DNA from: Anthoceros angustus
Lineage: Eukaryota > Plantae > Anthocerotophyta
Direction of reading: 5' to 3'
Assembly: GCA_010909165.1 (NCBI GenBank)
Contig: VJWM01000235.1
Coordinates: 1 to 64,000 of the forward strand
DNA length: 64,000 bases
The notes beneath the pieces were generated by a model. The model was not told where the DNA came from, did no database searches, and worked only from the letters and a program-made list of their open reading frames with translations. The position numbers were made by a program, and so were the translations under genes. Shown here piece after piece: positions 4,381 through 58,240 of this stretch. Numbering within the stretch: position 1 is the first letter of the stretch; each line of letters begins with the position of its first letter.

Positions 4381-5313
4381 TGCATGGCGTGCTTGCTACC
4401 CATAACGGTGTCGCCACCTCGAAACAGGAGTCGCGGCTGCTCCCTCCAGGTGTGGGCGTTCATCCAAGTTTTCATACCCGCAGTTGAGCGACAACTTCGA
4501 ACCTTGGAGTGTCATGCGAGCGTCTGCTTTGTCAAATTTCAGACCCGGATTCCGCTCCCGGAACCGGAGCTTAACGAAACCGTCTTGTGAAAATCGCGAG
4601 AAAATAAGAAACTTATTGTGAAAGGCAGATGGAAAGCGGGATGTACCGGGCCTTTATTACCAGGGCCGACAGTGTGATGTATACAGGCTGGCAGCTCCGA
4701 CATACCGAAGACAAACGAAGACTAAGATTGGAAAGTTGTCAAGCCAATCGTCTTCTACAGAAGCCGTCACGTAGGCTGATGTCTCCCCGGGGTTCCAAGT
4801 TAGAGCAGTCATGCTTCTGCTTGCACCAGGTTTGCACCCGGATCTACCCAACTCACAGTGTGCAGAACGAAACTTCTGGGGGTCAATAGCTAATGGCATT
4901 CTAGCTGCTCGCAGAGGAACACCAGCAACTCCACTGCTAAGAACAGGTCGTTGAGCGTAGAGGGATGCTTTCTGTTTCGATGAGAGGGTGCCAGGGTCAG
5001 TGTTAGCCATCCATGTCCACGTCTCAGTTTCAACAGGCAAGAAACTAAGCAAGCACATAACACCCCGAAAGCAATATTCTCACGATCGACCCTAACAATT
5101 GTAACAACCACCTGCAGATCGATGCACACGGTACCCATCCCTGACAACATTGTCTTTCTCTTCAAGCCTTAACATGGGTTTCCGTGGAACTGTGGCAGTC
5201 ACTGCACATGCGTACATTCTTCATTACCTGGTGACCACTCTGAGAGGTCCCAATCGGAGTTTTCGAGAGACCAAACGCTAAAGCTACGGCAAAGCACATG
5301 TTCCTTTTGCTTC

Positions 5314-5502
5314 TCACACACTAGCCTCAGCACCACGTTGGTGTAAGGTACGCGGAAGCACCGAGTTGGTGCTGTTGAGCACCCTTGCACGAAGATCAAT
5401 CCTGCAAGTGTAAAGCTCAGTAGTAGGTTTGATGCCATGCTGTTCAGGCATGGAATCAAAGTGCTTGCGACCCTCGTGGACCACGAGCACCGTAGTCGAC
5501 AC
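5314..5502 (-). pseudogene. PLS-class PPR fragment (C-terminal repeat)
   Basis: EGRKHFDSMPEQHGIKPTTELYTCRIDL; nucleotide paralog of 20610-20690. Confidence 0.8.
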
Positions 5503-8438: not shown

Positions 8439-8930
8439 CCAGGTGCAGGAGCAGTTTTGGCATCACAATTTTTTCTGTGATGTGTTGCACAGTGGCATTC
8501 CACTAACTTGTTTGTTGGCAACTGCCTGGTGGACATGTATGTACCGAAAGATGCACGCCAGGTATTTGTTAGGTTGTCCAAAACGGATGTGGTGACATGG
8601 ACCGCCCTGATACCTGGGTATGCACAGCAAAGACTCGACCAAGAGGCGCTTATTGTGTATGGACAAATGCAGGAGGCGGCCTCATTCTGGCTAACCATGT
8701 TACTTTTGGTTGCCTTCTGAAGGCCTTTGCAAGCACTGGTGCCTTACAGAAGGGCAGGCAGCTTCGAAAGAGGACTGCTGGATGACGCAGTGGTGGCCGA
8801 CTGCCTGGTGGACGTGTATGCGAATTGGGGTGATGTGAAAGGTGCACGCCAGGTTTTTGACAGCATGGCCACAAAGGATGTGGTGACATGGAATGCCCTT
8901 ATTGCTGGGTATGGTGCTTGTGATGAAGGT
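8439..8930 (+). pseudogene. PLS-class PPR pseudogene fragment
   Basis: GNCLVDMY..ARQVF....DVVTWTALIPGYAQ, HVTFGCLLKAFASTGALQKGRQ, CLVDVYANWGDVKGARQVFDSMATKDVVTWNALIAGY, spread over three frames. Confidence 0.9.
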
Positions 8931-9723
8931 CAGTTGCCGGAGTTCAGCTTGACCGCCTGTCAGAGTGCCGACAAGGTGCAAGCAGAAACGTGGCTCCTCC
9001 AACTGGGAACCCCGGGAAGACATCTAACACAGAGGAGACGGACCATTGGCTTAACAAGTCTGCAATCTCTAATCTTCGTTTTGTCTTCAGTACGTGAGGT
9101 TCTTAGAACCAAGGCCGTCCGACTAGGTACTCCACTCCGGCCAGGCTAAAAGTCCGCCATGGCCACCTGTGCGTCGCCCAGTCAGCAGTGGCCGCCGAGC
9201 GATCAAGAAGCCTCTCTGCGTGCTGCTCACACAAGATCCTTGCAGATCCGGTTCGGGTTGTGTAGAATTGTGCACCTGCCTTCTTTTCCGTATACACACG
9301 TACAAGCATTGCTGCAGTAGCAAATAAGAGCACTGGCTTCCGTCAGGAAGGCCACAAGACCCTCCGCGTTTCGTGCCCCAGAATGACCAATGATCGAGCG
9401 AAAAAGGAGTCCGAGAAGCGCATCTCGTGGTATCCCCAGCTGCCAGCCCACACTCACCGCTGGCCCTGGTAAGGAGGACTTCCTTAGACAGGACAAGGTA
9501 CATGCCGCTTTGCATCTCCTTTCACAGGTTTGGTTAAATTTCGCACTCGCGAGTCCGGGTCTCAGACTCTCAGTACACGAATGGCCTGCAAGCGAGCACG
9601 CGTTGGGGACTGGAGGGAGAAATTGGACGAAGCAGACACGCGCATGACATTACCGTGAAGAAGCGGTGTTGCGCACCTGGCGCTGCCGGATTGAGGGCAA
9701 TTCTGGGCTATCGAAATAACCAG

Positions 9724-11398
9724 TCAGGATTGCGGGATGTAAGTCTTCCACCAATCCGTGCCCGCGACGCCGTCCAAGTCGTGTGCGGCCAGCCAGCGCC
9801 AGTCCGGCTCCGGCAGCCCGTCGCCGCAGTCGCTGGGGCAGCCCGGAAGAGCCACCATCCGGGGCTCGGGTCGGGACGCGCACGATCCTTGGAAGTCTCT
9901 GTACAGCCCGGCCTCCGTTGCGGGGCCGTAGGGACACCTCTGCTCGGGACGGGGGGCCTGGATCAGCTCCACACTCTCTCGGTCGGGGACTCCCGTGGTG
10001 TAGAAGAGCGGGTCCTGAATGCCATGGTACCTCACCAAAATAACCGCGAATGCCAGCATCCTGCCGTCTATGCTGCAGGTCCAGCCCACCTCCCTGTGCG
10101 CCCTCTCCACCATTTCCCGCATCTCCCCGTCGTGAGCCTGCATGTACTCCAGCACCTCCGGCAGGTCCTGGAAGCTGCAGCCATGGCAAATGAGAAGAAG
10201 CTGGATGGTGTAGTCATGTACATGGACAAAGACAGAAGAGGCAGAGACAAAGAACGTACTGGTGGTCGGTTTCCATGAAATGCCGGCCCTTCTTGAGGAG
10301 CGGGTAGAAGAACTGGATGAAGGGCGAGTCCTGGAGGATGAGCGCGCGTTGGGTGAGGAGGACGTCGCAGAGGCGGCCGCCGCCGAGCCCGCCGTCCGTC
10401 ATGCGGTGCAGGCGGAGGCGGGGGCTGCTCCCCCAGTTGGCGCGGCGGAGCCAGAAGTTGGTGGTGGCGCCGCGGAAGACGGCTCTGGGGATCTTGTCCT
10501 GCCATCGCCTGCCGTGCGCCCGGAGCGCCTCCATCTCGTCCCGGGACTGCATGTAGGCGGGGCGGAGGTCGAGCAGATCCGGCACCACCAGATCGGCGTC
10601 CAGCTCCTCGGTCACGTGCGGCGTCCAGACCAGGTAGTTGGCGCGGCCGCTCCTGCCGCTGGCCATGGCCTCCTGCGCGAGGGCGTGGTCGCAGGTGTTG
10701 AGCAGGAACTCGACGCGCACGTCCCGCAGGCGGAAGCGGTCCAGCGTCGCCTGCAGGAAGGAGGCGGCGTCGTTGGCGCGGTCCAGCCGGAACTGCACCT
10801 TCATCACCTGCGGGCCGTAGCGGAAGAACACCTCCCCGCCTACCACCCGGAAGTGCGCGCAGCAGGCCATGAAGGAGTTGTTGCTCAGCGCGTCCCGGAG
10901 GTGGCGCACGGACCAGGCGCTGCGGACCCGGCCCCCCAGCCCCTGCACCGGCGCCCAGCCCTGCGTGAAGCTCTTCACCAGCCGCAGCACCTGGTGGAGC
11001 TTGGGGTCGGAGAGGTCGAACTCGGGGCTGGCCGCCCGGAGCTCCACCAGCTCCGAGGCCTCGATCCGCACCGCCTTCACCCGCTCGTGCCGCACGTCGG
11101 AGAAGCTCATGTGCTGCAGCTGCGGCTGCGGCTGCTCCTGCTCCGGCTGCCACCCCGCGGGCTGGGCCCCTTCCCCCTCTCCCCCGGTCCGGGGGCTCTG
11201 GGCCTTGGCCAGCAGCAGCTTCCAGCACCACGACAGCCGCAGCCGCCCGCCATACCCGACCTCACCGGCGCTGGGGGCCGCCTCCCCGTAATTGATGAGC
11301 GTGCAGGAGCTGGTGTAAGACACCAGCAGCAGCGACAAGGTGATGCCCAGGGGCACCAGGATGGCCAGCACCATCAACGACACTGTGGTCCCCTTCAT
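9724..11398 (-). CDS. Glycosyltransferase family 90 (CAP10 domain) type II membrane protein; 2 exons (11398-10260, 10174-9724)
   Basis: N-terminal TM. WQDKIPRAVFRGATT, DG....RL..VLL...LILQDSPFIQFFYPLLKKGRHF, DLPEVLEYMQAHD. 85-nt GT-AG intron keeps frame. Possible internal deletion (see findings). Confidence 0.85.
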
Positions 11399-12541
11399 CG
11401 CTCCCGACCGCGCTTCCCGCCAGCCTAAGCTTGCATCCAGGACGACTCATTCTGCTGCTGCCCAACTATGACATGAATCTCCTCCACTTCGACCCTGGGC
11501 CTGGAGGCCGTTCCGATCCTGTCTTGGTCACCTCTTCCGCTGCCAGCATCCATCCGCAACGAAGCCCGAACCAACAGCTCCTCTCTTTCTTCTCTCCCCA
11601 CACCAGGTCCTGTAGTCTAGTCTGTTACCAACATATTTAGAGACTGTACATCCAGTAGGTATGAGCAGACTTACTCCATCCTGTACACGCTCGATTCACC
11701 GAATTCCAAGAGCGTCAAGGGGAGAAGTTTTAAGTAGCCCTGGCAGGTGACGTCCTGTACTCAATGCCATCTGGCCTGCCTGACCATGCCTGACCGAGTT
11801 GACAATTTCGTGGCCGAAATCAAAGAAGAAAACAATACTATCACCGTACACGGCGGCAGAGCAGAGCAGAGCAAAGAATGGGCAGGGCGGAGCAGGGCAA
11901 AGTCCCGTCGCCTAAGGCTAACGCAAACTTAATGAGCCCTGCCATTCGTACCGCCCGTGTGCCCACGCACCCCGATGCAAAGCCGAGAGGCATGAGGCCG
12001 GCATGCCTCTCTTTCTTTCCGGCGTCTCCCTTTCCGGCAACGGGCGTCCGTCGTCGCTCTTCTCAACGGCTCCCTCCACCCTCCTCTCAACGGCTCCCGT
12101 CCGCGCTCCTCTCAACGCCGTCCTCCCGCACCTGCTCACTTGTCTCCGGTTGTCTCTGGTCTCAACCTGTTCACCACGAACTCCCACTGTCCTGTCCATT
12201 TTGAACACATTGTAATAGATTATACACACGGCTTTCAATTATAAAGACACTTAATTCACAACAAGTGCTATGACATCGCTTCTCTACCTCTAGCTTGCGT
12301 TACAAAAAGGCTTCTCCTTTGATAGAGGAGGCCTAGACCATACATTACCGACATCCTGAAGGGCTTGGGACGTTTTCTTGTGTTGGCTTTTGTTCCCTGC
12401 AGATTCCCAAAATGCTCGCTTCCTCTTTGTAGAAGTATCCCCTCCCACATCTTTGACCATATGTGGGGTGATGGCCAAGCCCTCCTCCACAGCTGTAGCC
12501 TCTATGCCCTCTAATGTCCGCATAAAACCTACTACAAGTCC

Positions 12542-14666
12542 TTAAGCATGGTCCACGAGGTGAGGATGTCGCTCAACTAGGCTTTGTAAGTTCTTGAGAC
12601 TACATCTAAATTGAGCCAAAGCTCGCTCTCGACCGACATTCAAGTTCATATCCTCAGCAATGTCCTGAATGGTTTCACCTGGCACGATATTTGCTACCTC
12701 AACTTGCTCTTCGCATCCCGCTGGTTGTAGAAGCTGAAGTGTTTCAGTGTCTTGTGAGAATTGCTCGCGAGGCTTATGGTGCATAAGCTCCTGCACCAAA
12801 GAAAGTGTGGGCATGAGCTTGTGGAGTAGCATCAGCACCTTAACTTGGTGCTTACAAGTGTGCCCTTGTGCAGCCCAAGGGCATGAGCACGTTGCCCAAC
12901 TTCCGTCAACATTGGAGACCACATATGCCATACCCTCATTGTTCTTGCCTGCAAGGACATAAGCATTTCTATCCTTTGCAGTTGGGAGAAACACAAACAT
13001 ATCCACTATTTTGGCAGCCTTAGCCACTGCATGCTCTACCATACGTTCAAGCTTGCTATTTCGAACGAAGCCATGCTCCTTACACTGTTGTTGATACCAA
13101 AAGTGCACATCTACTCATCTACTAAAATATCTAGAAGCCAATCAACACGCCTACCTCAGAATAACCGCAGGAAGCTCTCACCTTCAAATGAAGATGGTAT
13201 GCTTCAATCGAGCTATTGTCTTGCCTGCGGCACCGTCTGACTTTGAGCCACATGTGTATGATGTTGCCCCACTGGTGCTTGAAGTACTTGATGAAAGCTG
13301 GAAAGAGTGGCTCATATTGGACATACAGATCTACCAATTTGAGCTTTGCTGCTTCCTCTGAAATGTGTGGTGACCCTCTGAGGTACATAATGTCACCCAA
13401 CTTTTGCATGATGTCCGCCCTTGCCTGCCCATTCTTCACTTTCTGCAATAAGTTTCGTAACCATGCACGCCTTACGTGCCAAAGGCATAAGAATACCAAC
13501 ATGCCATCCCCAAAAATGTACTTGATGGCATTGATCTCCGCTTGGCAGTCATCTACTAAAAACGCGTTGGGCTTCCAAGTTGGGTCTACCAGCGTTGCCC
13601 GTGCCCGCAACACTTGTAACCATTTGGACATTCCCGCTCCATCAACCTCCTTGCACAACACCCAAGCCACTGGAATCCCGTTCATGAAGTTATCGAACAC
13701 CAACAAACTGACCAGCTAGAAATGCCACTTATTCAATCCAAAGGTGGCATCCATAGCTATGATAGAGTTATGCCCCATGTAACCATCATCTCCAACATGA
13801 ACGGTGTCTGCACACCGAGCACAAAACTGGTTGGAGCCATGCTTGAAATAGCAGGATTCTCGGGATAGAAAACTAATTGCTGACGTCCATCCAAATACGG
13901 ACACTCTCGTCATTGCTGTAGTATATGTCCGAGTGAGACATAGGCTTCCATATTTTGGACATCCTTTGGTGTCAAAAATCATCCTCGTAAACTTGTAACT
14001 GCATCCTCCGCTGCTTTCTCATGCACTCCTTCTTCGTGGTCAAGCAATATCATTGTTTAGGTACTTGACACAACAACTTGTGCCGCACCCACCTCCTCTT
14101 TTCTTGTGTGGGGCTAGCCAGGTGATGGGATAGGGGACTTGGCATGAGTTCTCCATGATGTAATTCACGTGGCATCCGTGTGAAAACAATCGCAACCTCA
14201 CTTCCACTATGTCAGGCCACTTAAGTAACCGGGTCACAACAAATTGGAAGAGGCATCCACGTTTCTTACTCATCGTTCGACGTCTACTGCCCGCCCCTGT
14301 CTTGGGCCTCACATTTGGAGCAAGGAAAGAAGCCGTCATAGCAGCCTCCCCACGACGGTCATCAGGCCCATACTGACAATGGTAGATTGTCACCTCGCTT
14401 CCTTGTGTGTCTTTGACGTGCTGCTTTGGTTCCGCGGTCTTCACCCAATGACGCAGCTTGATGAAGCAGGTGGGAAAGCAAGCATTTGCTTTCTCACCTG
14501 CAATAAAATCACCTACACGGTCAGCAGGAATGTAAGGCTTAGCGCGCTTCACATTCCTGTGCATTTTCATCTTCCCTTGATGATTGCCCACAGCCCATGA
14601 CAAATGCTCCTTGCTGAAGATGCCGGGTTCCGGTGTCTGCACTTGAGTGTGAGGCAAATGTTCCAT
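12542..14666 (-). mobile_element. Degenerate Mutator (MULE) transposase with SWIM zinc finger
   Basis: MDATFGLNK, NGIPVAWVL, FLVDDCQAEINAI..FLCLWHVRRAW (MULE DDE domain), NSSIEAYHLHLK, CSCPWAAQGHTCKH (SWIM). In-frame TAG at 13716-13718 interrupts the domain. TIRs not found. Confidence 0.9.
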
Positions 14667-15579
14667 TTTGCTGACATCACGATATTGGAGAGGCTGCCGC
14701 TCGCTTCCTCGATCGTATTCGTCAAGCTTCCCTCTGAACTGAACTGCATTTGAAGTGGGTTAGAACAGAGAAGCAGAGCAACAGAGTTGGAAAGGAAGGG
14801 GAGAAGTGGGTTACATCACTCGGAGTCATTTTGCATGAGCCCAGCCTGGGCCGCCGGGCCGGGCCGGGCCCTGTCTCCTACTAAACGACACAATTGTCAG
14901 ACGCTTACTTTCTCAACATATGTACCATCCTTTCGAAGGAGTCAGGACTCAGGACCCAGCCCGACAGAATCCCTGCAGCGCTCTGGAAGAGAGATACTGC
15001 TAGCATGGCTCCAATCAATGCTTCTCTCAAATAACCCTCGTTTTCTTTGGATATGGTCATGATGGCAAGTTGACCTCGTCGCATAAGCCTGAACCTGGCA
15101 GGCGTGCAAGGGTCGAAAATGGCCGTCGTGAATGTTGGAACCGTGAGCATGTTGGGTCAACAGCAGGCAGCAGGGAAAGCTTACCTCCTGAGGCAGTTGG
15201 AGCCCTATAATCTCTCGCCACTCTTATATAGGTATTTTTCTGTCTCTGGTTTACACGGTTACACAGTGCCCAACTCTAAAAAATGTGGGACTCTTTCTCT
15301 AACCTGTATCCAGTGAGTGCGGAATCGGAAGCACATGCTTGACTAGTAGAAGGATGACATTGATATCATTTCCATCATAATATGTGATATTGATAATAGG
15401 TAGTTGAAAGGTTTTCAGCTTGCAGCTTTTGATGAGTACCATGTAATCCCTTCTTCTCATTCTCACTACTGTATTCCGAGGGGTGGTTCAACACGGCAAT
15501 GCCGTAATAATTATTTTTAATTTTTTAAATAATTATTTTTTTGAAAAAAAATAAAGTTCAATATAAATATTTATATTTT

Positions 15580-17008
15580 TAAAATTTCAACATATAGTTC
15601 CTCATAGTTCTTCATATCAACTTTGTAGTTCTTGCTCAACCTTTCTGACCTAGCACAACAATACAGTACTTAGCACCAATTATACATATCATAGTAAACA
15701 ACAAACAAAATATCAAACTTACACCACAAAATCTCTAGCTGAGTCTTTGGAAAAATTAAAGTCCGCAATCTTCAAATTGTACAACTCCTCTCCTCCCCAG
15801 ACCCCAAACCTGGACATACAATAGTAGGCACACTTGCGAGTATTATGAATTAGTAACTTCAACCTTGGTTGTACCTTGAGTAAAATCAAAAGAAGAACAG
15901 GGAAAGCTAAATAGCAACTTCACCTTTTTTGAGCCCCTCTTGGAAAAGTAATCTGATGGTCTGGATGGCTGAGGATCAAAAATTCCTCACCATCTGTGAT
16001 GAGTTTTGTCTCGTTCTTGGTAGAAATTATACTCATATCCTTGCTAATCTTCATTGACGCCACAAGGGCAGCATGTGTACCTGTAAAGCATCCATGAAAC
16101 ATATTTATCATGGGGACATGAATTTGCTCCAAAGTGCATTCCCACACAAAGATTCTATTGAATCCATGAAACAATGACATAAGCCTGCCACAAAGAAATT
16201 ACGAATTAGAACCGTGAAAACAGTTTAAGACCAGCCTAAAAACTGAAACAGGTTTTGGAAAATGAAAAGTACAATGACGTTTCATGATAAAAACGTTTTC
16301 CATCCCTTGTACTTCGAAGGGATGGAAAAAACGCATTAGAAGAAGGTTAAGATCCTTAACAAGTATGTCTTCAATCGCAGCAACCCATCGTTTGACACCA
16401 CTGATCTTCAAAAAATTTCGAAACCTACTCTTGACCCAATTATTTTGCTTCTTACTACCACTAACCCTACCCGACATAGCATCCTTAACAGCATTTTCAG
16501 GAAAATCTGGGTCAAACCCTTGTTCAACACAACTAAAACAGTCAACTTCATCCTCACACACTGAATGGTCATTAAGGTTAGCTTTCATATGCTCATACAT
16601 TTCATAACATTCATCATCAGGAACCACTTCAAGCACATGCAAATCATCAGGTAAAGCAAACTCACCAACATCAGAGGTTTTCCCATTTGGCTGCAACTCC
16701 AAAGATTTTGCCAGGCAGACATATCTAATCTGCAAGCACTCTTTAGCAGCATTCAAAATTGAAGGATCTATAGTAAGCAATCTAGTAGACTCCCCAACAA
16801 AATGCACCCCTCTCTCTGTAACAGGCACATAGTTAGTCATCTCAGTCAAGGGCCCTTCAACCATATGCAGAGGTTGCGTATTCAGTCGTTCTCTTTTCTC
16901 ACAGTACTCTGCAGCACACCGAGCAGCTTCCTTCCTTGAGAACTGCCTAGGAGGACCCGACATTGATTGAAAAGGAACTAGGAAGGTTCCCTCATTGTTG
17001 ACCACCAT
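15580..17008 (-). mobile_element. Spliced, decayed DUF3504/Crypton-like tyrosine recombinase gene
   Basis: Collinear motifs NNWVKSRFRNF, DLNLLLMRF, LMSLFHGFNRIF, ALVASMK, ITDGEE, PRGAQKR, CAYYCMSRFGV(W)GGEELYNLKIADF. After a 73-nt GTAAGT..CTAG intron (15722-15650): SERLSKNY. C-terminal catalytic half absent. Confidence 0.75.
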
Positions 17009-17041
17009 CCCATCAATAGAAGAAGAAGAAGAATTTTATTT

Positions 17042-20200: not shown

Positions 20201-20469
20201 GGGTCTTGCCTCCTATCCCGGTGGCGCATTTTACGCCGCAGAACTGGCGCCGGTCGGGTGGAGAATACACAACATAATTCAAATCGGTCGGGAATTGAAC
20301 TACGTTGTGTATCCATGGGTCGGGAATTCAACTGGCGCCGGGTCCCTCCCCGCCCCAGTTCCGTAATACGTACCTTCTATCCACTGAATAATAACGATAA
20401 GAGTAATACTAAAACTGGCATTCTTGCTGCTCGCTGGGGAGCACCAGCAACTCCTCTGCTCAGAACAGG

Positions 20470-22650
20470 GATGGTTTCTGTTTTGATGAGAGTTGCAGGC
20501 CTTTTACAAAGACATCAAGCCCACAACATTGCTTTGGCCCTCACATGATAATAGCATCTTCTCTGCCTCATCTAAATCGCCAGCACGCCCAAGAAATCAA
20601 TCATGCAGGTGTATTGCTCAATAGTAGGTTTGATGCCATGCTGTTCAGCCATGGAATCAAAGTGGTGGCCACCCTCGAGGACCAGTTCCTCATGACTGCA
20701 TGATTCTAAAAGGCAAGTAAAAGTAGTACCATCAGGCTGAATACCAGCAACTAGCATCTCTTCAAAACAAGCTAGAGCCTTGTGACCACCATCACAAGCA
20801 CCATACCAGATATCAGGGGGGTCCACGTGACCACATTCTTTGTGTTCATGCTGTCAAAACTTAGCGTGCATCTTCCATTCACCACACTTTGCATATATGT
20901 CCACCAGGCAGGTGCCCACCACTTCGTCATCCAGCAGTCCTCTTCCAATAATCTGCGAGTGCACCTGCCTGCCCTTCTGTAAGGCACCAGTGCTTGAACA
21001 GGCCTTCAGAAGCCAAGAAAAAGTAACAAGGTTAGCCAAAAGCAGGCCCTTCAGCTCGGATCCATTTGTCCATACACAACAAGCGCCTCTTGACCGTCCT
21101 CTTGCTGTGCATACCCAGCGATCAGCGCTGTCCATGTCACAACATCCATTGAGGCCAAGCTGTCAAAAACCTGGCGGCATCTTCCAGTTCACCACATTTT
21201 GCATACATGTCCACTAGGCAGGTGCCCACCACTACGTCATCAGCAGTCCTCAAACGACTATCCGTGAGTGCCTTCCTTAAGTCGTCAGTACTACCACAGG
21301 CCTTCAGAAGGCAAGAAAAGTAACATGGTCAGTCAAAATGAGGCCCGCCTCCTCCATTTGTCCATACACAACAAGCGTCTCATGGCCAAGCCCTTGCTGG
21401 GAATACCCAGCAATCAGCACCGTCCATGTCAACACATCCTTTGTGGCCATGCTGTCAAAAACCTTGCGTGCATTTTTCAGTTCGCCACATTTTGCATACA
21501 TGTCCCCCAGGCAGTTGCCCAGAAACAAGTTTGTAGGAATGCCACTCTGCACCACATCACAGTGCACTTTTCTGCAAGATTCCAAGCGGCGGCAAATGCA
21601 CAAGCCTGAAGGGCAGCTACAAAGACGTGACCATGGGCCTTCTCTCCTGACTTCCGCATCTCATGGTCCAGTTGTTCCGTGATAACATCTAGTTTGGCTA
21701 TCCTGCTGGACACGTCCTTGCCTCCTCTAGCCTACCTCCACATGCATACATGCGCAAGATATGGTTCCCCAAGATATGTGCATTCGACTCGTACCCAAGT
21801 TTGACAGTCCTTCCTAGCTGTACACAGTTTCAGCACAGTGCAAAACAGCGACTGAGAAATAGTAGAGTCTGTCTGCGCCAGAGATTCCAGGGCTCCAACG
21901 GCCACGGCAAGCTTCCCCTAGTGACATAACGTGCTCAAGGTTACAAGATTACAGCAGTAATGACGCCCAATTCCGAACCTGCACGCCTGCAAGGTTCAGG
22001 CTTATCCGGAGAGCTGGACTCGGAAGTGGAGGCACCAATAGCCATCTGCATATCCAAGGAGACGAGCTGCTCATCAAGCCAAGCTGGCTTAACAGGATAT
22101 TTAACAACGGCACCCTGCCAGACCACTTCCGCCGGACGTCAGGCGAACGGGAGCTCTTATTATCTCGCCTTTTGTCCCACCACATGGTAGGGTCCAGAAA
22201 AAAATGTTGCCACAAGCTGCACCTGGAGCCTGTGGTTGCCAGGGGTTTACTCCCTAAGATGAGGTGAGCGGGAGCTCCTCGTCGAATCCCCAATTTGTTT
22301 GGTGCACAACGGGTTCGGTTGCCATACTGTGGCCATCGTTCAGGGACCGCTGTTCGAAGATGAGCCTGACAACAGACTATGGCAGAATGCCCAAGTACTG
22401 TTTATGGCACATGGTCACTGTTGACTTCGGGCTGCTAAGGCCAGCTGATGAAGAAGGAAGTGCTACAACACCAATGTTTGCGACATTTTGCCGCAGGTGA
22501 TACATCCAGACTGGGCGATGAGCTCCCTTGCTTTTCAGAACATGGCATTTCATTTTCCTGCTGGTAGGCCGTAGATGTGGTAACCCGGACCGGGGCCGGG
22601 GCTGAGGCTCTCAGCCAGCCCATTGCATGATGGAGATTCAATATTCTGTA
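20470..22650 (-). pseudogene. OSB-type PDF motif + PLS-PPR + E-domain pseudogene
   Basis: LWQHFFLDPTMWWDKRRDNKSSRSPD ... PAWLDEQLVSLD, then LGNHILRMYACGGRLEEAR, several PPR repeats (GNCLGDMYAKCGELKNARKVFDSMATKDVLTW), and HFDSMAEQHGIKPTIEQYTCMIDFLG..DEAEKML. Many frameshifts. Confidence 0.85.
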
Positions 22651-24300
22651 CGATATGGAAAATGCACCCAGTAATACAAATTCTCTAAGCGAATATATAA
22701 ACAATATAAATAATCAATATAACAATAATATAATACATCTTTGGATTGCACCCAGATATTTTCACATGATGAATTAGGGGTGTGGTGCATGTAGGGATTA
22801 GCAGCGTCCATGCTTAAAATATTATAGCGAGATTAGTTAAGTCGATCTAAGATTGAGTATGAGATGATTAATGACTAATTTTTCAAGTAAATATATTCTA
22901 GATATGTGTCTAAGCTAGAAATGGCATATAATTGTGGAGTACATAGGAACTTGCAATTGTGGTGCACATAGAAATTAGCAATGTAAATGCTTCAAATATT
23001 ATCATAAGACGGTCAAGTTCATCTAAAATTTGAATACCAATAAGATATTCATGTGAATAGAATTAATCATTTAAGTGAGTGCATTTCAAACATGATACAT
23101 AGTAATCCTCATCCTTTAAAAGTGGGTTTAGTTATGAGGTAGTGTCAAATGTATATAATTAATCTCATCATTAGCTCGCAACTTCATGGAAGATTTCAGC
23201 CATAACAATTAAAGTAACGGACGTCAGGCGAACGGGAGCTCTTATTATCTCGCCTTTTGTCCCACCACATGGTAGGGTCCAGAAAAATGTTGCCACAAGC
23301 TGCACCTGGAGCCTGTGGTTGCCAGGGTTTACTCCCTAAGATGAGGTGAGCGGGAGCTCCTCGTCGAATCCCCAATTTGTTTGGTGCACAACGGGTTCGG
23401 TTGCCATACTGTGGCCATCGTTCAGGGACCGCTGTTCGAAGATGAGCCTGACAACAGACTATGGCAGAATGCCCAAGTACTGTTTATGGCACATGGTCAC
23501 TGTTGACTTCTGGGCTGCTAAGGCCAGCTGATGAAGAAGGAAGTGCTACAACACCAATGTTTGCGACATTTTGCCGCAGGTGATACATCCAGACTGGGCG
23601 ATGAGCTCCCTTGCTTTTCAGAACATGGCATTTCATTTTCCTGCTGGTAGGCCGTAGATGTGGTAACCCGGACCGGGGCCGGGGCTGAGGCTCTCAGCCA
23701 GCCCATTGCATGATGGAGATTCAATATTCTGTACGATATGGAAAATGCACCCAGTAATACAAATTCTCTAAGCGAATATATAAACAATATAAATAATCAA
23801 TATAACAATAATATAATACATCTTTGGATTGCACCCAGATATTTTCACATGATGAATTAGGGGTGTGGTGCATGTAGGGATTAGCGTCCATGCTTAAAAT
23901 ATTATAGCGAGATTAGTTAAGTCGATCTAAGATTGAGTATGAGATGATTAATGACTAATTTTTCAAGTAAATATATTCTAGATATGTGTCTAAGCTAGAA
24001 ATGGCATATAATTGTGGAGTACATAGGAACTTGCAATTGTGGTGCACATAGAAATTAGCAATGTAAATGCTTCAAATATTATCATAAGACGGTCAAGTTC
24101 ATCTAAAATTTGAATACCAATAAGATATTCATGTGAATAGAATTAATCATTTAAGTGAGTGCATTTCAAACATGATACATAGTAATCCTCATCCTTTAAA
24201 AAGTGGGTTTAGTTATGAGGTAGTGTCAAATGTATATAATTAATCTCATCATTAGCTCGGGCAACTTCATGGAAGATTTCAGCCATAACAATTAAAGTAA
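22133..24300. repeat. Tandem duplication, 2 x ~1085 bp (22133-23217, 23218-24300)
   Basis: Near-identical copies; CGGAC present at all three junctions. Confidence 0.97.
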
Positions 24301-25411
24301 CGGACCGTCATGAGCAATCTCAATGTTATGTGCATGCACATGACATTGATGCCACGAGCGGATCTAGACAATGAGTATCCATGAGAGGAAGGTGTTGTGT
24401 CGGACACGAACAGTTCCGGCCAAAGAATATCCATGAGAGAGAGAAGCTGTGTTGGATATAAGATTAGTGCATGTGATGCTGTAAACATAAAGAGAGAAAG
24501 TAAATTCATTCTACGCTGTACTTGGGTTACAACATGTCTTATAGTCACCCCTTACTCTTGGAGTATAGGGGTTGCCTAACTGAACTAGACTCATATTCTA
24601 ATACTCCCCCTCACGCCAAAGATGTTAGGCTTGCTTACTATCTTGGTAAGGGAGACCACTAATGCCTCGAAGAGCTCCGCAAGCTAAGTGTTTATCACGA
24701 GGCAGGCTCTTGGTCAGGATGTCTGCCTCCATAAGCTCTGTCGGACAGTACTCAAGACGTCACATTTCTCATGCACATAGTGGTACTTGAGATCAATGTG
24801 CTTGGACCTGGAACTGAATTTCGAGTTGCCGGCAAGAGCAAGGGCGGATTGGCTATCTATCTTGATGACCATTGGCTTCTCTTGCGTCATACCAAGTTCA
24901 TCAAGGAGTCGGACACAATCAACAACGCGCTAGGTAGCAAGTGTTGTGTGGATAAGGGACGGATGCTTTGACTCCTCTTCGGATCGATTAGCAAGAGGTT
25001 TTTCATTGTTTTGAGACTTTGTGTGGGAAATAAGGGGAAACGCGTGGATAATAAGGGTAATCCAGCTAGGCCGCGGCAGCTCCGATGTGGGTGAGGTCCG
25101 GGGAAATTCAGAAGGACGGCAGCAGGCCGCGAGGGAAGTGGACTCCGAAGTAACTCCGGAGGAACTCCAGAGTAGGTCCGGAGGAGGAACTCCAGAGGGG
25201 AAGGACAGGAGGAGGGGCCCTGGGTGATCCAGTGGTGTAGGACACAATTTTGGAAGGATGACACGTGGACGATGGCAGGGGGTTGTCTGACATGCAGCGA
25301 GCCAGAACCCCAAAATTGTTATAGCTATAACAAGGAAAACGGGTCTTTTACAACGGAAATTACAACGGCAATTACTACGACTTTACGCCGTCCGTTGTAA
25401 AACCCTCGTAG

Positions 25412-26465
25412 TAAACACACCTTAGTAATATCCGTAGTAAATATTCATACTAATTATCGAAGGCTATACCTTGTATTATATACTGGTATTGTCTGGTATC
25501 GTTATGCGACTTAAGCGGGTGGTCCGTATGGTGGTTAACCTTTACAACGCCTTTACTACGGACAATACTATGATGCACTTACAACGCGTTTTACAACTTC
25601 ACTAACCATAGTTAATATATTATAGTTAAGTAATCAAGGTTACTTGACTATAGTTTACTAACTAGGATTAAGTAATCTGTTACATGACCCCATCTTGATT
25701 GGTGTTAAGTAACCACGGTTAATTAAACTCAATGTTCTCTATAAAGAGCCGTACCTTGTTGTAAATGTCCGTTGTCAAGGTGCGTTCCCTTTACAACGGA
25801 CTTTTAAACCTCGATGTAAAGGGGTCGTTGTAATGTGTTAAACCTTTACAACGACCCTATTGTAAAGGAACCCAGTTGTAAAGGGTTCGTAGTAAAGAGC
25901 TATCCCTTTACAACGACCCTGTTGTAATGGAACCTCGTAAATAAACACACCTTAGTAATATCCGTAGTAAATATTCATACTAATTATCGAAGGCTATACC
26001 TTGTATTATATACTGGTATTGTCTGGTATCGTTATGCGACTTAAGCGGGTGGTCCGTATGGTGGTTAACCTTTACAACGGACGCCTTTACTACGGACAAT
26101 ACTACGATGCACTTACAACGCGTTTTACAACTTCACTAACCATAGTTAATATATTATAGTTAAGTAATCAAGGTTACTTGACTATAGTTTACTAACTAGG
26201 ATTAAGTAATCTGTTACATGACCCCATCTTGATTGGTGTTAAGTAACCACGGTTAATTAAACTCAATGGTCTCTATAAAGAGCCGTACCTTGTTGTAAAT
26301 GTCCGTTGTCAAGGTGCGTTCCCTTTACGGACTTTTAAACCTCGATGTAAAGGGGTCGTTGTAAATGTGTTAAACCTTTACAACGACCCCTTATAAAGGA
26401 ACCCAGTTGTAAAGGGTTCGTAGTAAAAGCTATCCCTTTACGACCCTGTTGTAATGGAACCTCGT
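25412..26465. repeat. Tandem duplication, 2 x ~530 bp, of the CACTA left subterminal region
   Basis: TAAACACACCTTAG starts at 25412 and 25942. Confidence 0.95.
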
Positions 26466-34027: not shown

Positions 34028-34827
34028 GGATGTAAGTCTGGTCTGTGAGAATGTTCTGCGGAAGAAAATATTTTTGCATATCATTGTCGTTGTGTATGTT
34101 TGGAAACCTTGAATTTTTGTGAAAATGTTATCGTTTCCAAGCTTTTTCCAAGGAGTTGTCAAAACAGCCATGCAGAGTTGATGGGATAGCCTTACCCCCT
34201 TCTTCTCAAGTCACCCATGCTGGAACATGATTCCCCTCACGTGAATTAGTTTGTATAATCCTTTTGCTCCGGAGTTGTGCATATCAATTGGTGCGAACGT
34301 CATCCATAGCGGCATAGTAATCTATCTACGACGTCTATCAGCCATCTCCCCACAACATGGAACAATACGCATAGAAGGCAAACACAGCAATGTGCCAAGC
34401 CGGCAGCCAGGTGTCCACTTTTAGGGGAAAACGCATTCCTGGAATAAGGAGTAATGAAAGGCGAGGCTCCTGCATGCTGTTGCTGGCGGGAAGAGAGCGT
34501 GCAGCGAGCGCGGCTTGCTCTTCGTTGAAGGGCAGGTCTACAGCGATAGGGGACAAATTGTGATCACGCTCTGAAGCTCTCAAGTATCCGGGGACCGGTG
34601 CTGAAGGTGAGAGGGTGCCTGACGTCGTTTTGGGTTCCTGTACAGTCCGCCGCCGTCAGGCTCCACTTCGAGTTTTAGCCTGCTGCTGCTGCGCATGCAC
34701 CCTGGCAGGCCGCAGGGCTGGATAGCTTCTCTCACAGCTGCCATTGCGTCACCTTCTGTGTGCTGCCTGTAGTCCTGCTCACTTTCAACTGGCGTGTCTC
34801 AGGCTTTGCTGCAGGTGTTCAGTCTCC

Positions 34828-36816
34828 ATGTCCTCGGCAGAGCTTGCAAGCAGCTCGCGGCCCATTTGGCTGAACAAGCTAAGGGACTTGGGCTTCTCGG
34901 AGGAGGAGGCGGAGGATGCACTTGAAGACTGCGACAAGAAGGGGCAAGAGACCACCGTGGAAGCCCTAGTGAATGCTGTACTGGACCGTCGGCAGCCGAG
35001 CAGCAAGTTTGGAGTCGTTCGGGATTCTATCTTCTGCGATGAGGATGAGGATGAGGATAAGAGTAAGGATGGGGAGCAAGCGGAGGAAGAGGAGGAGCAG
35101 GAGGGGGAGGACATGGCGCAGCTCGGGGACCAAGGTGAGGTGAATGATCGAGGCAAGGCAAAGGTGTTGGACCAGCCTGATCACCGATGGCGCCAGCTGC
35201 GAGGAATGGGCTACGAGCGTGATCTTGTCAGCCTGGCATTGAGCAACAGCGGTGAAAGCGCGACTGTGGCGGATTTGGTTGATTGGATGTCAGCTTACAC
35301 GGTGAGTGACCTTCTTCCCAGCAACATGCCGGAGCCGGAGCCGGAGCCGCAGCAGGAGGATGGTGAACCGCCGGGTGTAATTGATGGCTTGAAGAAGGTT
35401 CTTCCGTACGAGCTGTGGGCTGATTACGAAGAACAGGTTTTGAAGCACGGCTGTAAGGATGTGGCTGAGGCTCTGGACCTGATTGATGCTTTGCGATACC
35501 AGGAGAAGTTGGACGCGGCTGAAAGGCCGGGGACTTCACAGCCATCGGGCTCTTCACAGCCACCGGGCATGCCTTGTAGCAAGAACGGTATGGAGGACCC
35601 GTCCGAGTTCTGGGACTGTGAAGACGTGGACGCCTACGACTTGGGCTGTACCTCGCCTCCAGGGGAGAGCGAGGAAGAGGAGCTCACAATAAGTGTGACT
35701 AAGAGGAGAAAGACTGAAAAGCGCGGGCGCTCCACTGTCCTTACTTCCGAGAAGGAGGAGAAAGTTAAGTTGAACAGCAAGGATGGGAAGACAGGATTCG
35801 GTGTGCCCGGCAGGGGATTCATTCCGAGGCAGATCGGGGAGAAGTCACTGGCTCAGGCACCTTACTTCTACTTCGAGAACGTGGCATCCATGCCCAAGGA
35901 CCAGTGGGCCGAGATTACTCGGCATCTCTACAGCATCGAACCTGAGTTTGTGGACTCCCTTCACTTCTCGGCTTGCAGACGCCCCAGAGGATACATCCAC
36001 AATCTGCCGGTGGAAGGCAGGCAGCTCATCATTCCGCCACCGCCTATGACTTTGCAGGAGCTGTTTCCGGACACGTGGGGCAGGCACTGGCCTGAGTGGG
36101 ACCCCAGGCAGAAGCTCAACTGCATTGACACCAAGTCAGCGTGTCATAGCATGGTGCAGCGGCTGTCTGCCACCATCAAGAGTGAACGCATCTCGGGTGA
36201 TAAGGGGATGCAAGTGGAGTGTGTCAGGTTTTCGAAGAAATGGAACTTGGTCTGGACTGGCCCCAATCAATTATCCCCACTCGCATGCGAGGAGATAGAA
36301 ACTCTCATGGGCTACGACCAAGGCCACACCAGAGGCGTGGTGAACAGAGTTGATCGGTGTAAGGCTCTGGGAAACAGCTTCCAGGTTAACACCGTTGCCT
36401 ATCACTTATCGGTCCTGAAGCCTCTTTATCCTGCAGGTATGAAGGTGATCTCCATTTTTGCCGGCATAGGAGGTGCGGAGGTTGCTCTGCATAAGATTGG
36501 CATCAAGTTGAACGTCCTGGTTAGTGTAGAAATAGAAGACAAGGTCAGGCAAGTAGTTCAGAATTGGTGGGATGTGACAGAGCAACAGGGTATACTCGTC
36601 CATGATATCAAGAATGTGAAGGATTTGACCAGGGTGAAGATGGTGGCTCTCAGGGAAAGATTTGGCAAATTTGATTTGCTCATCGGGGGAAGCCCCTGCA
36701 ACAATCTGACCGGCAACAACAGATATACGCGAACGGGGCTGCAGGGACCAGATTCATACTTGTTCCATGACTACAAGCGGATTCTGTATGATTTTAGGGA
36801 GCTAATGCGAAACTAG
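34828..36816 (+). CDS. DRM: DOMAINS REARRANGED METHYLTRANSFERASE (de novo C5 DNA methyltransferase), single coding exon
   Basis: UBA-like segments (LRDLGFSEEEAEDAL, LRGMGYERDLVSLAL). Rearranged motif order VI (YFENV), VIII (RRPRGYIHNLP), X (LGNSFQ), I (FAGIGG), IV (GGSPCNNL) with the catalytic Cys intact. Confidence 0.96.
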   Translation: MSSAELASSSRPIWLNKLRDLGFSEEEAEDALEDCDKKGQETTVEALVNAVLDRRQPSSKFGVVRDSIFCDEDEDEDKSKDGEQAEEEEEQEGEDMAQLGDQGEVNDRGKAKVLDQPDHRWRQLRGMGYERDLVSLALSNSGESATVADLVDWMSAYTVSDLLPSNMPEPEPEPQQEDGEPPGVIDGLKKVLPYELWADYEEQVLKHGCKDVAEALDLIDALRYQEKLDAAERPGTSQPSGSSQPPGMPCSKNGMEDPSEFWDCEDVDAYDLGCTSPPGESEEEELTISVTKRRKTEKRGRSTVLTSEKEEKVKLNSKDGKTGFGVPGRGFIPRQIGEKSLAQAPYFYFENVASMPKDQWAEITRHLYSIEPEFVDSLHFSACRRPRGYIHNLPVEGRQLIIPPPPMTLQELFPDTWGRHWPEWDPRQKLNCIDTKSACHSMVQRLSATIKSERISGDKGMQVECVRFSKKWNLVWTGPNQLSPLACEEIETLMGYDQGHTRGVVNRVDRCKALGNSFQVNTVAYHLSVLKPLYPAGMKVISIFAGIGGAEVALHKIGIKLNVLVSVEIEDKVRQVVQNWWDVTEQQGILVHDIKNVKDLTRVKMVALRERFGKFDLLIGGSPCNNLTGNNRYTRTGLQGPDSYLFHDYKRILYDFRELMRN

Positions 36817-55396: not shown

Positions 55397-58240
55397 ATGA
55401 GTTGTGACACTCATATCGGCTGGGATTTCAGGTGGCCGAGGCTGAATGGTAACGACGACGGCACCAATTGCCTTGTGAACGGATTGGAGATGACAGTTCT
55501 GTCCAACCTACCCGGCCCAGACTATGCACTGTGTGTAGAGCCGTTTGTGCCTTTCGAGTTGCTCCCCCGAGAGGGACTGAACCAGCGGCTGAAGGATGCC
55601 GTGGAACGTGCCGAACATCGCCAAGTATCCACATCTGCAGCCCCCGGCCCCGCAGAGCACGCGCCTGCAAACACAGGCCCCCGCAGCTCTATCAAGAAGA
55701 AAAGGAGGCGAGTTTCCCTGCAGGCAGCGTTCGGAGGAAGCAGGAACCTGTGGGAGGGCATTTCTGCTGCCAACAGGGAGCGACGGCGGCCGTCCGACCT
55801 GGTGGCATCGCCTGCCCCGCTCCTCTGTGCTGGAAAGAGGGGCCCCGGGCCGGGTCCTGCAACCGCCGAGAAGGAAAGGAAGCTTGCCGGAACCGGAACC
55901 GGAACCGGAGCCGCTGCGGCTCCCTTGAATTCTTCCAAGCCGAACTTCCTATCGGACGACAGCGACACAGACTCCTCCTGCTTCTCCGACGGGGCCGCCT
56001 CCCCAGAAGAGTCCAAGCTGCAGGAGGACTTCCACCGGAAATTTCACCAAGAGCTGAGCCGCAAGCTGGAGTTCGAGCAGCACGGCGGGCACCACGGGAG
56101 GTGCATCAAAGTCCCCGAGCTGAAGCAGCAGCGCAAGGCGTGTCTCCCGCACTGGCACTGCAGCAACAGCATCAGAGTCACCACCGACCGGATGAGCCTG
56201 GGCCTCCCTCCGGAGCCGATGCTTCCGCTCCACCTCACCCTTGACGGAGTCCGCCTGAGCGGGGAGCCTCTGACGGGAAACGACTCCATTCCCCCAGGCG
56301 GCGACACCTACGCTCTGGTGAGCGAGCGAGCCAGGGGTGACGACGACGATGAATCCGACTCCGACTCCGACTCCGATTCCGATTCCTCCACGACCTGCAG
56401 CAGCTCGGATTCCGACTCCGCCTTCCGCTCTGCCAGCCGCCAAAGGGCGCACACCTTCCACCGAGGCGTGAAACCCTCACCCGGCCCCGTCCCGGCTGCC
56501 AAGCTCGGCATCAGCATCGCCGGTGGCGCGAGCTGCAACAAGGATGGGAATTCCAAGAAGCAGCCCGAGGGGAGGTCGCGCCGGGCTCACCTTTACCTTA
56601 AACCCATGCTGCCCCGGGAAGCTGTGCAGCGACCTGCTGCAGACGACCATAGCCACGGGCCCAGGGGTGGAGCGGGAGCGGGAGCAGGAACGCGGAAGGC
56701 GGCCCCGGCGCCGGGTCCGCAGGGGAGGCTGTCCCCATGGCCTGCCCACCGGCCCCTGAAGGTGCCCCAGACTCCTGCCCTTCCGGCTGCGCCAGGGGGA
56801 TGGCTGCAGCAGAGCGGCCCGGGATCGAGAGCAAGCTCCCGCGCTGCGTCGCCCGCTCCTGTCCCGGAGGCGAGGGAGAGAGAGATCCGGATAGGCCCTT
56901 GGAACAGCCTGTCGCCGAGGACCGAGCTGCTGGGCTGCGCGGCGCCTGGCGGGGCTGGAAATGTTGGAAGCGGATCCGGAGAGGAGCATTGCGGCGCCTT
57001 CTGCTTCAGCATCCCGTTGCCCGGGGAGCGGTCTCTGCTGGTTAGGGCTGAGACGGGTCCCAAGCAGGTGCATATCTCGGTCGCGTTGCAGGATGTTAGC
57101 GGAGAGGACGGGACGTTGCTGGCAGAACGAGACCGGGTATCTGGACAGCAGCAGCATGGGGAGCAAATGAAGGCCGGCTTCTGGCCACCGTCCGGGAAGG
57201 ACTCGACCGCAAGGAAGCGTAGCGTGTCTTGGAGCTGTCCTGAGATTCTAGGCCCCGGTGTGGCGCCTTCCGCTGCCAGGCCGCTTTCTCCTGTGCGGTC
57301 GCGAGACGTGCCGGTGACCGGGCCCAGAGCGGGGTCTCCTGTATCATGGACTGTGCCGCTGCATGGCCCTGTGAATCGAGAGCCGTCCCCTGTCTCATGG
57401 AACATATCAGTCCAGGGCCGAGCAGCAGCGAGGACGCCTTCTCCACCGTGTGTCCGTCCAGATCCCGGACAGGATGCGGAAGCGGACCATGGCCATGCCG
57501 ACGTCACCATCCCCCTCCCGGCAGAGACCCCGGAGGCTTGCCCTAGCGCAACGCCGGCGCTAGATGTTGCTAACCAGCATCTTGAGGCAGTGGTAGTAGA
57601 ATCGAGCGATGGCAGGGAGCATACAGTGCTACTAGAACCTAGCGATGCCAGGGAGGCTTCTCTTCCACGGCCACTGCCCCTGTCTGACCAGCATCCGCCA
57701 GCAGTACCGTTACTGCACGAGGGGAAGCCCGGGCTTGCGTCATGCCGAAACATCCAAGTGCAGCCGGGGCCGATACGGGACATCCTGGACTGCCAAAATG
57801 CAGCTACCTTCCAAGAGGTGAAGACGGGGGATGTAGCAGTGGCAGTGCCCCGGGGTGAGCAGGATGATCATAAGAGAAGGACGTCAGATTTGAAGTTCTC
57901 CAAGTCCAATCACAATTTCTTGGAGAAGCTGGCAAGGAAGGCAGGGTCAGGGGACCCCCACTGTGTCCGGGCCTTGAAGCCGTTCCAGGAAGAGGCGGAG
58001 AAGGAAAACGAGTGCGAGGAATGTGAGCCCCAGAAGTGCAGCAGGAGGTGCTGCAGGATAGGAGCAAGTCAGAGTCATCACGTCGTCGTTGGCGCGCACA
58101 AGGAACTGCCAAAGGAGCAGGTTGCAGCTAACTCCCAGACGGAGAAGGGCATCCCGTCGGTTGTCGGGAGAAAACATTGGCTTTCGCTTTTCAAACGAGC
58201 AATTCGCCAGAAGTCGGAGGACCTCAACGCCTATGTGTGA
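55397..58240 (+). CDS. 947-aa Pro/Ser/Ala/Gly-rich protein of unknown function
   Basis: 2.8-kb stop-free ORF; ATG sits directly after a CAG (possible splice acceptor); no recognised domain. Confidence 0.7.
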   Translation: MSCDTHIGWDFRWPRLNGNDDGTNCLVNGLEMTVLSNLPGPDYALCVEPFVPFELLPREGLNQRLKDAVERAEHRQVSTSAAPGPAEHAPANTGPRSSIKKKRRRVSLQAAFGGSRNLWEGISAANRERRRPSDLVASPAPLLCAGKRGPGPGPATAEKERKLAGTGTGTGAAAAPLNSSKPNFLSDDSDTDSSCFSDGAASPEESKLQEDFHRKFHQELSRKLEFEQHGGHHGRCIKVPELKQQRKACLPHWHCSNSIRVTTDRMSLGLPPEPMLPLHLTLDGVRLSGEPLTGNDSIPPGGDTYALVSERARGDDDDESDSDSDSDSDSSTTCSSSDSDSAFRSASRQRAHTFHRGVKPSPGPVPAAKLGISIAGGASCNKDGNSKKQPEGRSRRAHLYLKPMLPREAVQRPAADDHSHGPRGGAGAGAGTRKAAPAPGPQGRLSPWPAHRPLKVPQTPALPAAPGGWLQQSGPGSRASSRAASPAPVPEAREREIRIGPWNSLSPRTELLGCAAPGGAGNVGSGSGEEHCGAFCFSIPLPGERSLLVRAETGPKQVHISVALQDVSGEDGTLLAERDRVSGQQQHGEQMKAGFWPPSGKDSTARKRSVSWSCPEILGPGVAPSAARPLSPVRSRDVPVTGPRAGSPVSWTVPLHGPVNREPSPVSWNISVQGRAAARTPSPPCVRPDPGQDAEADHGHADVTIPLPAETPEACPSATPALDVANQHLEAVVVESSDGREHTVLLEPSDAREASLPRPLPLSDQHPPAVPLLHEGKPGLASCRNIQVQPGPIRDILDCQNAATFQEVKTGDVAVAVPRGEQDDHKRRTSDLKFSKSNHNFLEKLARKAGSGDPHCVRALKPFQEEAEKENECEECEPQKCSRRCCRIGASQSHHVVVGAHKELPKEQVAANSQTEKGIPSVVGRKHWLSLFKRAIRQKSEDLNAYV

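Follow-up and report, generated by a model that had tools for sequence, protein, structure and literature searches.

Cryptons are DNA transposons known from animals, fungi, oomycetes and a diatom, and the DUF3504 domain derives from their recombinases (Kojima and Jurka, PMC3212892). DUF3504 has been called 'widespread in Opisthokonta', with thousands of intron-bearing 'Glomhopper' copies in Glomeromycota (PMC13465315, 2026), and active Cryptons in Chlamydomonas insert preferentially in gene-proximal intergenic DNA (PMC9977147). The literature that we searched treats DUF3504/CryptonA as opisthokont and places separate Crypton groups in stramenopiles and green algae. No plant DUF3504 case was found by a full-text literature search for DUF3504 together with 'plant', and PMC3212892 and PMC13465315 report none. 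Land-plant 'Crypton' labels occur in automated repeat tables (PMC4438587, Table 2) and as 535 entries in one plant transposable-element database (PMC8729191); no characterisation of these entries was found in the literature searched. Here, we describe a locus in a 64-kb stretch of Anthoceros angustus DNA (contig VJWM01000235.1, positions 1 to 64,000; the window), which is likely a decayed, 3'-truncated remnant of a Crypton-type DNA transposon gene of the DUF3504 (CryptonA-like) kind, lying between genes of a non-seed land plant.

The DUF3504-like locus and its match to a family profile

The original prediction, made by reading the DNA, had described three reading segments and a 73-nt intron that join into one collinear run of Crypton/DUF3504 tyrosine-recombinase motifs. 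All of these motifs were found in their places on the minus strand. The first open reading frame (ORF1; 17008..16202, 269 codons) starts with the ATG at 17008 and ends at TAA 16201-16199. The segment that follows in the same frame (16198..15923, 92 codons) ends with ...PRGAQKR before TGA 15922-15920, and the next (15919..15725, 66 codons) ends with ...CAYYCMSRFGVWGGEELYNLKIADF...DFVV before TAA 15724-15722. Excision of the 73-nt intron (15722-15650) fuses ...DFVV to SERLSKNY..., after which the frame stays open until TAA 15573-15571. The features of the locus are as follows:

16505..17008, minus strand: N-terminal 168 codons of ORF1, acidic and Cys-containing; the profile alignment begins only at amino acid 169
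16298..16504, minus strand: N-terminal DNA-binding ('QRICH1 domain') part, ORF1 amino acids 169-237, with the motifs ...NNWVKSRFRNFL...DLNLLLMRFF; profile positions 13-79
16185..16274, minus strand: intron-like insert 1, about 90 nt, holding the in-frame TAA 16201-16199; exact limits uncertain
15924..16184, minus strand: exon-like segment 2, ...SLFHGFNRIF...VASMKISKDMS...ITDGEEF...PRGAQKR; profile positions about 90-174
15834..15923, minus strand: intron-like insert 2, 90 nt, GTGAAG...CAA, holding the in-frame TGA 15922-15920
15723..15833, minus strand: exon-like segment 3, where the catalytic domain begins (box I); FGVWGGEELYNLK aligns with the family motif FALRGGEEHRxL
15650..15722, minus strand: 73-nt intron, GTAAGT...TAG, 29% G+C, with the in-frame TAA 15724-15722 inside its donor
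15571..15649, minus strand: exon-like segment 4, SERLSKNYKV...LKI and the stop TAA 15573-15571; the last family-like residues lie at about position 229 of the 433 in the profile
15500..15570, no strand: A+T-rich low-complexity tract, the truncation point; no recombinase-like sequence follows until the next gene (ATG 14666)

Homology was assessed with a profile built independently of the window. Metagenome contigs were scanned with a degenerate DNA pattern for N-H-S-L-R, 20 residues, T-G-H, 8 residues and Y, which represents the family's box II, H and Tyr region and keeps the H-to-H and H-to-Y distances as they are in Cre. This bait was unable to bias the test because the region it describes is missing from the window, and both its yield and Pfam validated it in retrospect. 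The scan yielded at least 120 loci. Among the matches listed, most encode proteins reading ...KTNHSLRATAATRLY..GVDEQLVMERTGHRS..GVRSYKRTS..., and about twenty are bacterial-type integrases. Twenty-nine long, non-identical ORFs from these loci were aligned (alignment A2, uncurated and validated only by Pfam). All 29 match both PF12012 (DUF3504; best 1.5e-37) and PF00589 (Phage_integrase), and in 20 of them PF25561 ('QRICH1 domain') lies ahead of PF12012. The consensus reads T....W...F..W ... L..lL..F..EvRKkdG..Y.P..L..i..gi.R.lR in its N-terminal part, F....LDaeMKrL...G.G....a.P.s.eeE..LW..g.LG...P..L..t..f..g..FALRGGEEHR.L....q..L.....g...L.YTE..SKN..GG in the middle, and RC.V ... WY ... TNHSLRAT ... 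TGHRS....R.Y in its C-terminal part. A hidden Markov model (HMM) of 433 positions was built from A2.

Every stop-to-stop fragment of at least 15 amino acids in the six frames of the window (2,444 fragments, 106,707 residues) was then searched by hmmsearch with all filters off. Ranks 1 to 3 were taken by fragment 15923-16198(-) with 12.0 bits (E 0.0082, profile positions 106-159), fragment 15722-15919(-) with 11.0 bits (E 0.017, positions 175-207) and fragment 16202-17035(-) with 10.3 bits (E 0.027, positions 13-79), while rank 4 in the whole window reached only 3.1 bits (E 4.1). The three top fragments are adjacent, lie on one strand and are collinear with the profile, which they cover at 13-79, 106-159 and 175-207 in genomic order. 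Alignment of A2 with the three pieces by hhalign gave, in the same order, P = 0.0021, 0.015 and 0.0089 (consensus columns 74-145, 160-227 and 240-271). A control HMM built from the bacterial-type integrases of the same metagenome scan found no match in the window (best score 2.2 bits).

The signal grew when the pieces were joined. A read-through with X at two stops, from which only the 73-nt intron had been removed, scored 33.7 bits (E 2e-9 for 2,444 targets), compared with a maximum of 6.0 bits in 2,000 residue shuffles of the same read-through. Additional removal of 15923-15834 raised the score to 45.6 bits (+12) and merged the two downstream matches into one ungapped domain (107-229). We also scanned 5,020 in-frame deletions across the first gap; removing 90-99 nt near 16274-16185 gave a contiguous alignment over positions 18-229 and 59-61 bits, which is an optimised figure (E down to 1e-17). 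When the same N-terminal half of intact members was scored with a profile purged of relatives above 35% identity, values of 66-190 bits were obtained, compared with 34-61 for the window copy. By sequence similarity, the locus is placed in the DUF3504/CryptonA-type family, as had been predicted from its motifs. What it retains is a variable N-terminus followed by the DNA-binding ('QRICH1') domain; of the catalytic domain, the first third is left, which extends past box I to the ...SKN... strand. The first 168 codons of ORF1, which had no detectable relatives among 1.84e9 protein representatives, correspond to the variable N-terminus of Crypton proteins.

General-purpose searches did not reveal this relationship. 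In hmmscan against Pfam (E<=10), the three pieces matched none of PF12012, PF00589 and PF25561, ORF1 had no Pfam match of any kind, and no separate piece reached the curated gathering score of PF12012. Of the 162 positions of PF12012, the three pieces together keep only about 55. Since PF12012 covers the catalytic domain alone, of which about a third is left and is split by inserts, we do not count the silence of Pfam as evidence against homology. The original prediction had proposed a check against recombinase profiles and would have been given up had none matched; the Pfam profiles for PF12012 and integrases remained silent on the pieces, whereas the A2 family profile was significant. No homologue of ORF1 was found in 5.8e9 clustered proteins, and the box-I piece shared too few words with any entry there. 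An exhaustive phmmer search of the 1.84e9 representatives returned a repetitive bacterial Ig-like (He_PIG) protein as the sole match to ORF1, which we rejected as spurious. The protein collections searched do contain moss, liverwort, gymnosperm and angiosperm proteomes. The box-I piece retrieved only antibody noise from PDB sequences, and an exact look-up for the 269-aa ORF1 product as a called gene found no record. In metagenome contigs, 54 pattern matches to ORF1 were obtained and none was confirmed as a relative. The practical lesson is that Pfam and billion-sequence searches were blind here, and that a family profile including the N-terminal part, run on all frames, revealed the remnant.

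Two further observations concern the bait pattern itself. In viral contigs, the N-H-S-L-R..T-G-H..Y pattern was not found. One intact DUF3504/Phage_integrase protein with the full pattern is shared by at least seven contigs of the metagenome assembly WLWD01... (loci L013, L048, L054, L058, L078, L083 and L103). A protein repeated over contigs in one assembly is what transposons would show, and this one looks like the product of a currently or recently active CryptonA-type family in a eukaryote.

Inserts, splice sites and catalytic residues

The reading frame is interrupted by three inserts of 73-90 nt, each of which contains one of the three in-frame stops. The A2 relatives have no insert of comparable size at these places. 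Insert 3 is exactly 73 nt long and has the splice contexts GGT|GTAAGT ... TTGTTGTGCTAG|G, with GT-AG ends. Once it is removed, the frame is open again and ...DFVV|SERLSKN... aligns without gaps to the family sequence ...YLxY|TExxSKN..., so that it can be regarded as a clean spliceosomal-type intron, in agreement with the original prediction.

Insert 2 has a good donor (AAG|GTGAAG) and ends in AA, not AG: at 15836-15834, CAA stands where the acceptor CAG is expected. Its excision joins PRGAQKR to CAYY... in frame, and the gain of 12 bits upon its removal bears out the predicted junction. Insert 1 shows the opposite defect. It has a strong acceptor (TTTCTTTGTGGCAG|G at 16185/16184) and no in-frame GT donor; the nearby GTs at 16312, 16294, 16278 and 16272 all yield frame-shifting lengths. 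We therefore rejected the first interruption (about 16274-16185) as a clean intron: no in-frame GT..AG fits the homology, and the in-frame choices come at the cost of conserved residues or depend on poor sites. An alternative model restricted to GT-AG sites (introns of 186, 60 and 73 nt) gives an ORF of about 372 aa; its sites are weak, a conserved helix is lost and the score is 36 bits. Our inference is a spliced parent gene that contained three short introns and has since acquired at least two splice defects. An intron-containing parent gene would resemble many eukaryotic Cryptons.

The first catalytic Arg, near-invariant in the ALRGGEEH of A2 (box I), is replaced by Trp in the window copy (TGG, 15799-15797), as the original prediction had proposed. 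The other half of the catalytic domain, comprising H-x-x-R, H/W and the nucleophile Tyr, is absent from the downstream (15660-14600) and upstream (18600-17000) DNA in all frames. Likewise, no fragment matching profile positions 230-433 (NHSLR, TGH, Y) was found anywhere in the 64 kb, consistent with the predicted break at A+T-rich DNA. Because Arg I is Trp and the C-terminal half is missing, the window copy lacks every member of the catalytic R-H-R-Y tetrad. Judged from these residues, it cannot act as a recombinase, and most likely the remnant has no present role.

Both point changes are of a kind that had been attributed to silencing of the element. CGG to TGG is a transition at a CpG on the coding strand, and CAG to CAA, read on the plus strand, is C to T within CTG (a CHG context). 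The observed/expected CpG ratio is 0.34 in the element and 0.72 in the whole window. The two changes may have arisen by deamination of methylated cytosines, which the pattern and the low CpG ratio fit without proving it.

Terminal inverted repeats, long terminal repeats, direct repeats or target-site duplications bounding the ORF or the remnant were sought and none was convincing. A repeat of about 140 bp in inverted orientation (69% identity, 15080-15218 / 21877-22008), whose indels are not multiples of three, brackets the A+T-rich block that holds the remnant. It has no target-site duplication, and weak similarity extends slightly past its outer ends; for these two reasons we think it unlikely to represent transposon termini. 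A second copy of the remnant was found neither elsewhere in the window nor in metagenome contigs or protein collections. In an active ancestor, an excised and probably circular copy would have been inserted by the recombinase through site-specific recombination, and the element may formerly have been mobile in this genome.

Genomic surroundings and alternative explanations

The window is a gene-dense land-plant region. An A+T-rich intergenic block of 5 kb holds the remnant, at 0.9-2.3 kb upstream of a SWIM-zinc-finger gene. The segment at 15.5-20.4 kb has 37-39% G+C and is more A+T-rich than the flanking genes; ORF1 itself is embedded in DNA of 39-41% G+C. The located gene features of the window are:

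2.7-3.5 kb: xyloglucan fucosyltransferase (XG_FTase), domain match
12542-14666, minus strand: multi-exon SWIM-zinc-finger gene (three ORF-sized exons, 188-208 aa), ATG at 14666, 0.9 kb downstream of the remnant
34744-36816, plus strand: DRM-type (domains-rearranged) methyltransferase, a single ORF of 690 codons that encodes UBA domains and the beginning of a C-5 DNA methylase
53.5 kb: F-box gene, domain match
59.7-60.3 kb: weak, sub-threshold B_lectin match

Matches to ArsA/GET3-type, Sof1 and PPR proteins were also obtained in the window. The DRM ORF is about 50% identical to its best matches, which come from mosses and liverworts, and in a tree it sits on a long branch that is not part of the seed-plant clade (99/99 support). 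Because of this moderate identity and the long branch, the source lineage appears to be poorly represented in protein databases. Taken together with the xyloglucan fucosyltransferase and the PPR and F-box genes, the position of DRM upholds the predicted land-plant genome, and on these sequences we regard the host as a non-seed land plant.

Among window ORFs of at least 100 aa, no transposase or reverse-transcriptase domain was found. The SWIM gene presumably bears less resemblance to a MULE transposase than to the conserved plant 'SWIM zinc finger family protein' (Arabidopsis At1g60560 type). A MULE/FAR1 link via this adjoining gene was considered and rejected: the gene has its own ATG (14666), and no other transposase domain was found in the window ORFs of that size.

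Repeats and G+C-rich frames occur elsewhere in the window. A tandem 1.09-kb unit (99% identity) lies at 22133-23226 / 23218-24310, and a second tandem pair (95%) at 25381-25938 / 25906-26465. Just upstream of the A+T-rich block, the region 20416-21562 contains a tandem duplication within 20.8-21.5 kb and ORFs without a Pfam match, and dispersed repeats (74-89%, direct and inverted) link it with 4700-5483 and 8475-9095. The A+T-rich region 59107-61581 (30% G+C at 60-62 kb) carries diverged tandem and dispersed repeats of about 100-500 bp and overlaps the ORF with the B_lectin match. A 947-aa ORF at 55397-58240 (+; 63-64% G+C) belongs to no Pfam family, and its exact product is absent from called-gene records. 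Overlapping ORFs of 387-394 aa occupy both strands of 10068-11428, also at 63-64% G+C. Both regions are probably G+C-rich coding regions.

Several observations weigh against reading the locus as a decayed transposon. The best pairwise identity between the window copy and any fetched protein is only 24-29% over about 100 residues, which does not place it within any one Crypton group. Pfam itself is silent on the pieces. No terminal repeats or target-site features can be defined, and a single copy is visible in the window, the metagenomes and the protein databases, which does not speak for mobility in this genome. Finally, all three in-frame stops fall within inserts, and about 390 exon-like codons are free of stops and show no obvious frameshift, contrary to what one would expect of an old neutral pseudogene.

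[quoted passage not shown] ORF1 with its ATG and 269 codons in DNA of 39-41% G+C, the confinement of stops to intron-like inserts and the open frame of about 372 aa in the GT-AG-only model would all suit such a gene, and domesticated DUF3504 genes have typically lost catalytic residues (PMC3212892). However, ORF1 has no homologue in the 5.8e9 clustered or 1.84e9 representative proteins, bryophyte and seed-plant proteomes included, and no recorded gene has its exact product. The canonical splice model that keeps the frame open relies on poor sites, deletes the conserved helix and scores 36 bits versus 59-61 for the homology-guided model, whose introns are themselves defective. Domesticated DUF3504 genes have an intact ORF, conserved across species and usually fused to other domains; the window copy contains stops unless it is spliced, and two of its three inserts lack a usable site. 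We consider a host gene unlikely, and leave it an appreciable minor share of probability mainly because the exon-like codons carry no stop. Foreign DNA, that is, an assembly chimera or a contaminant from an associated fungus or animal, is considerably less probable still. The wide occurrence of DUF3504 in Opisthokonta, its huge amplification in Glomeromycota, colonisers of bryophyte thalli and plant roots (PMC13465315), and the A+T-rich composition of 15.5-20.4 kb would be compatible with such an origin. Yet the 64-kb window is contiguous and the remnant has plant genes to either side of it (SWIM at 0.9 kb; XG_FTase, DRM, F-box and PPR), other intergenic stretches are equally or more A+T-rich (60-62 kb), and a contaminant should bring an intact element or several kilobases of foreign context, whereas only a truncated half-gene is present.

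Chance resemblance, in which an orphan or random open frame happens to carry recombinase-looking motifs, would account for the empty Pfam, PDB and large protein searches and for the marginal significance of the single pieces (E 0.008-0.03). It is effectively refuted by the arrangement of these pieces: three independent marginal matches are the best three of 2,444, adjacent, on the same strand and collinear; once joined they reach E 2e-9 to 1e-17 where shuffles stay at or below 6 bits and the control profile is negative, and removal of a canonical GT-AG intron restores frame and alignment together. A decayed, truncated Crypton-type gene remains the reading that we favor. If the remnant is read in this way, it shows that a transposon of the Crypton/DUF3504 type once reached the host plant lineage. 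Horizontal transfer in some form may have brought the element there. The specific scenario of a cross-kingdom transfer of an opisthokont-type CryptonA/DUF3504 element into an early-diverging (bryophyte-grade or pteridophyte) lineage, possibly donated by a Glomeromycota symbiont, with introns acquired or kept and the open 5' ORF perhaps expressed as a lineage-specific truncated protein, is speculative, and we think it rather improbable.

Comparison with known Crypton and DUF3504 systems

The closest described systems are the CryptonA elements of animals and the 'Glomhoppers' of fungi. Like them, the window copy has a variable N-terminus, a PF25561-like domain (T..W...F..W ... L..lL..F..EvRk) and the start of DUF3504 (FALRGGEEHxxL ... 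TExxSKN), and many of their copies are intron-bearing (PMC13465315). It differs from them in its host, a non-seed land plant, in being one copy without defined termini and in its low identity (24-29%) to any fetched member. In addition, it covers only profile positions of about 13-229 out of 433, has Trp for Arg I and is missing H-x-x-R/H/Y.

The domesticated animal DUF3504 genes (WOC/ZMYM2-4, QRICH1, KCTD1 isoform b and KIAA1958) are likewise Crypton-derived, have lost catalytic residues and carry a QRICH1-type domain before DUF3504 (PMC3212892). Those genes, however, are conserved, syntenic, full-length and fused, whereas the window copy is unconserved and truncated, has no fusion partner and contains defective splice sites. 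Among plants, the ALOG (LSH1/G1) proteins of land plants provide a precedent for a derivative of a recombinase N-terminal domain (PMC3537659). In contrast to the window copy, which matches DUF3504/Crypton, they form a conserved gene family of DIRS1-type retroposon origin (PMC3537659), and the ALOG domain profile of Pfam had no match to ORF1, which we do not assign to that family.

In the green lineage, the CryptonF elements of Chlamydomonas reinhardtii demonstrate that Cryptons are present and active, and that they lie near genes (PMC9977147). The gene-proximal intergenic location of the remnant resembles that of these active Cryptons (PMC9977147). By description, CryptonF belongs to a separate Crypton group (F).

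This fossil of a DUF3504-type gene is statistically secure, and its presence in a non-seed land plant widens the known host range of this transposon type; the fossil also supplies a concrete query for intact plant copies. It thereby makes two questions testable: whether Cryptons entered land plants vertically from algal ancestors or horizontally, e.g. from mycorrhizal fungi, and whether plants, like animals, recycled parts of Crypton recombinases. Compared with the systems described above, the remnant is best classified as a member of the known DUF3504/Crypton family in a new host group; its sequence makes it a family member, and it is not an active recombinase.

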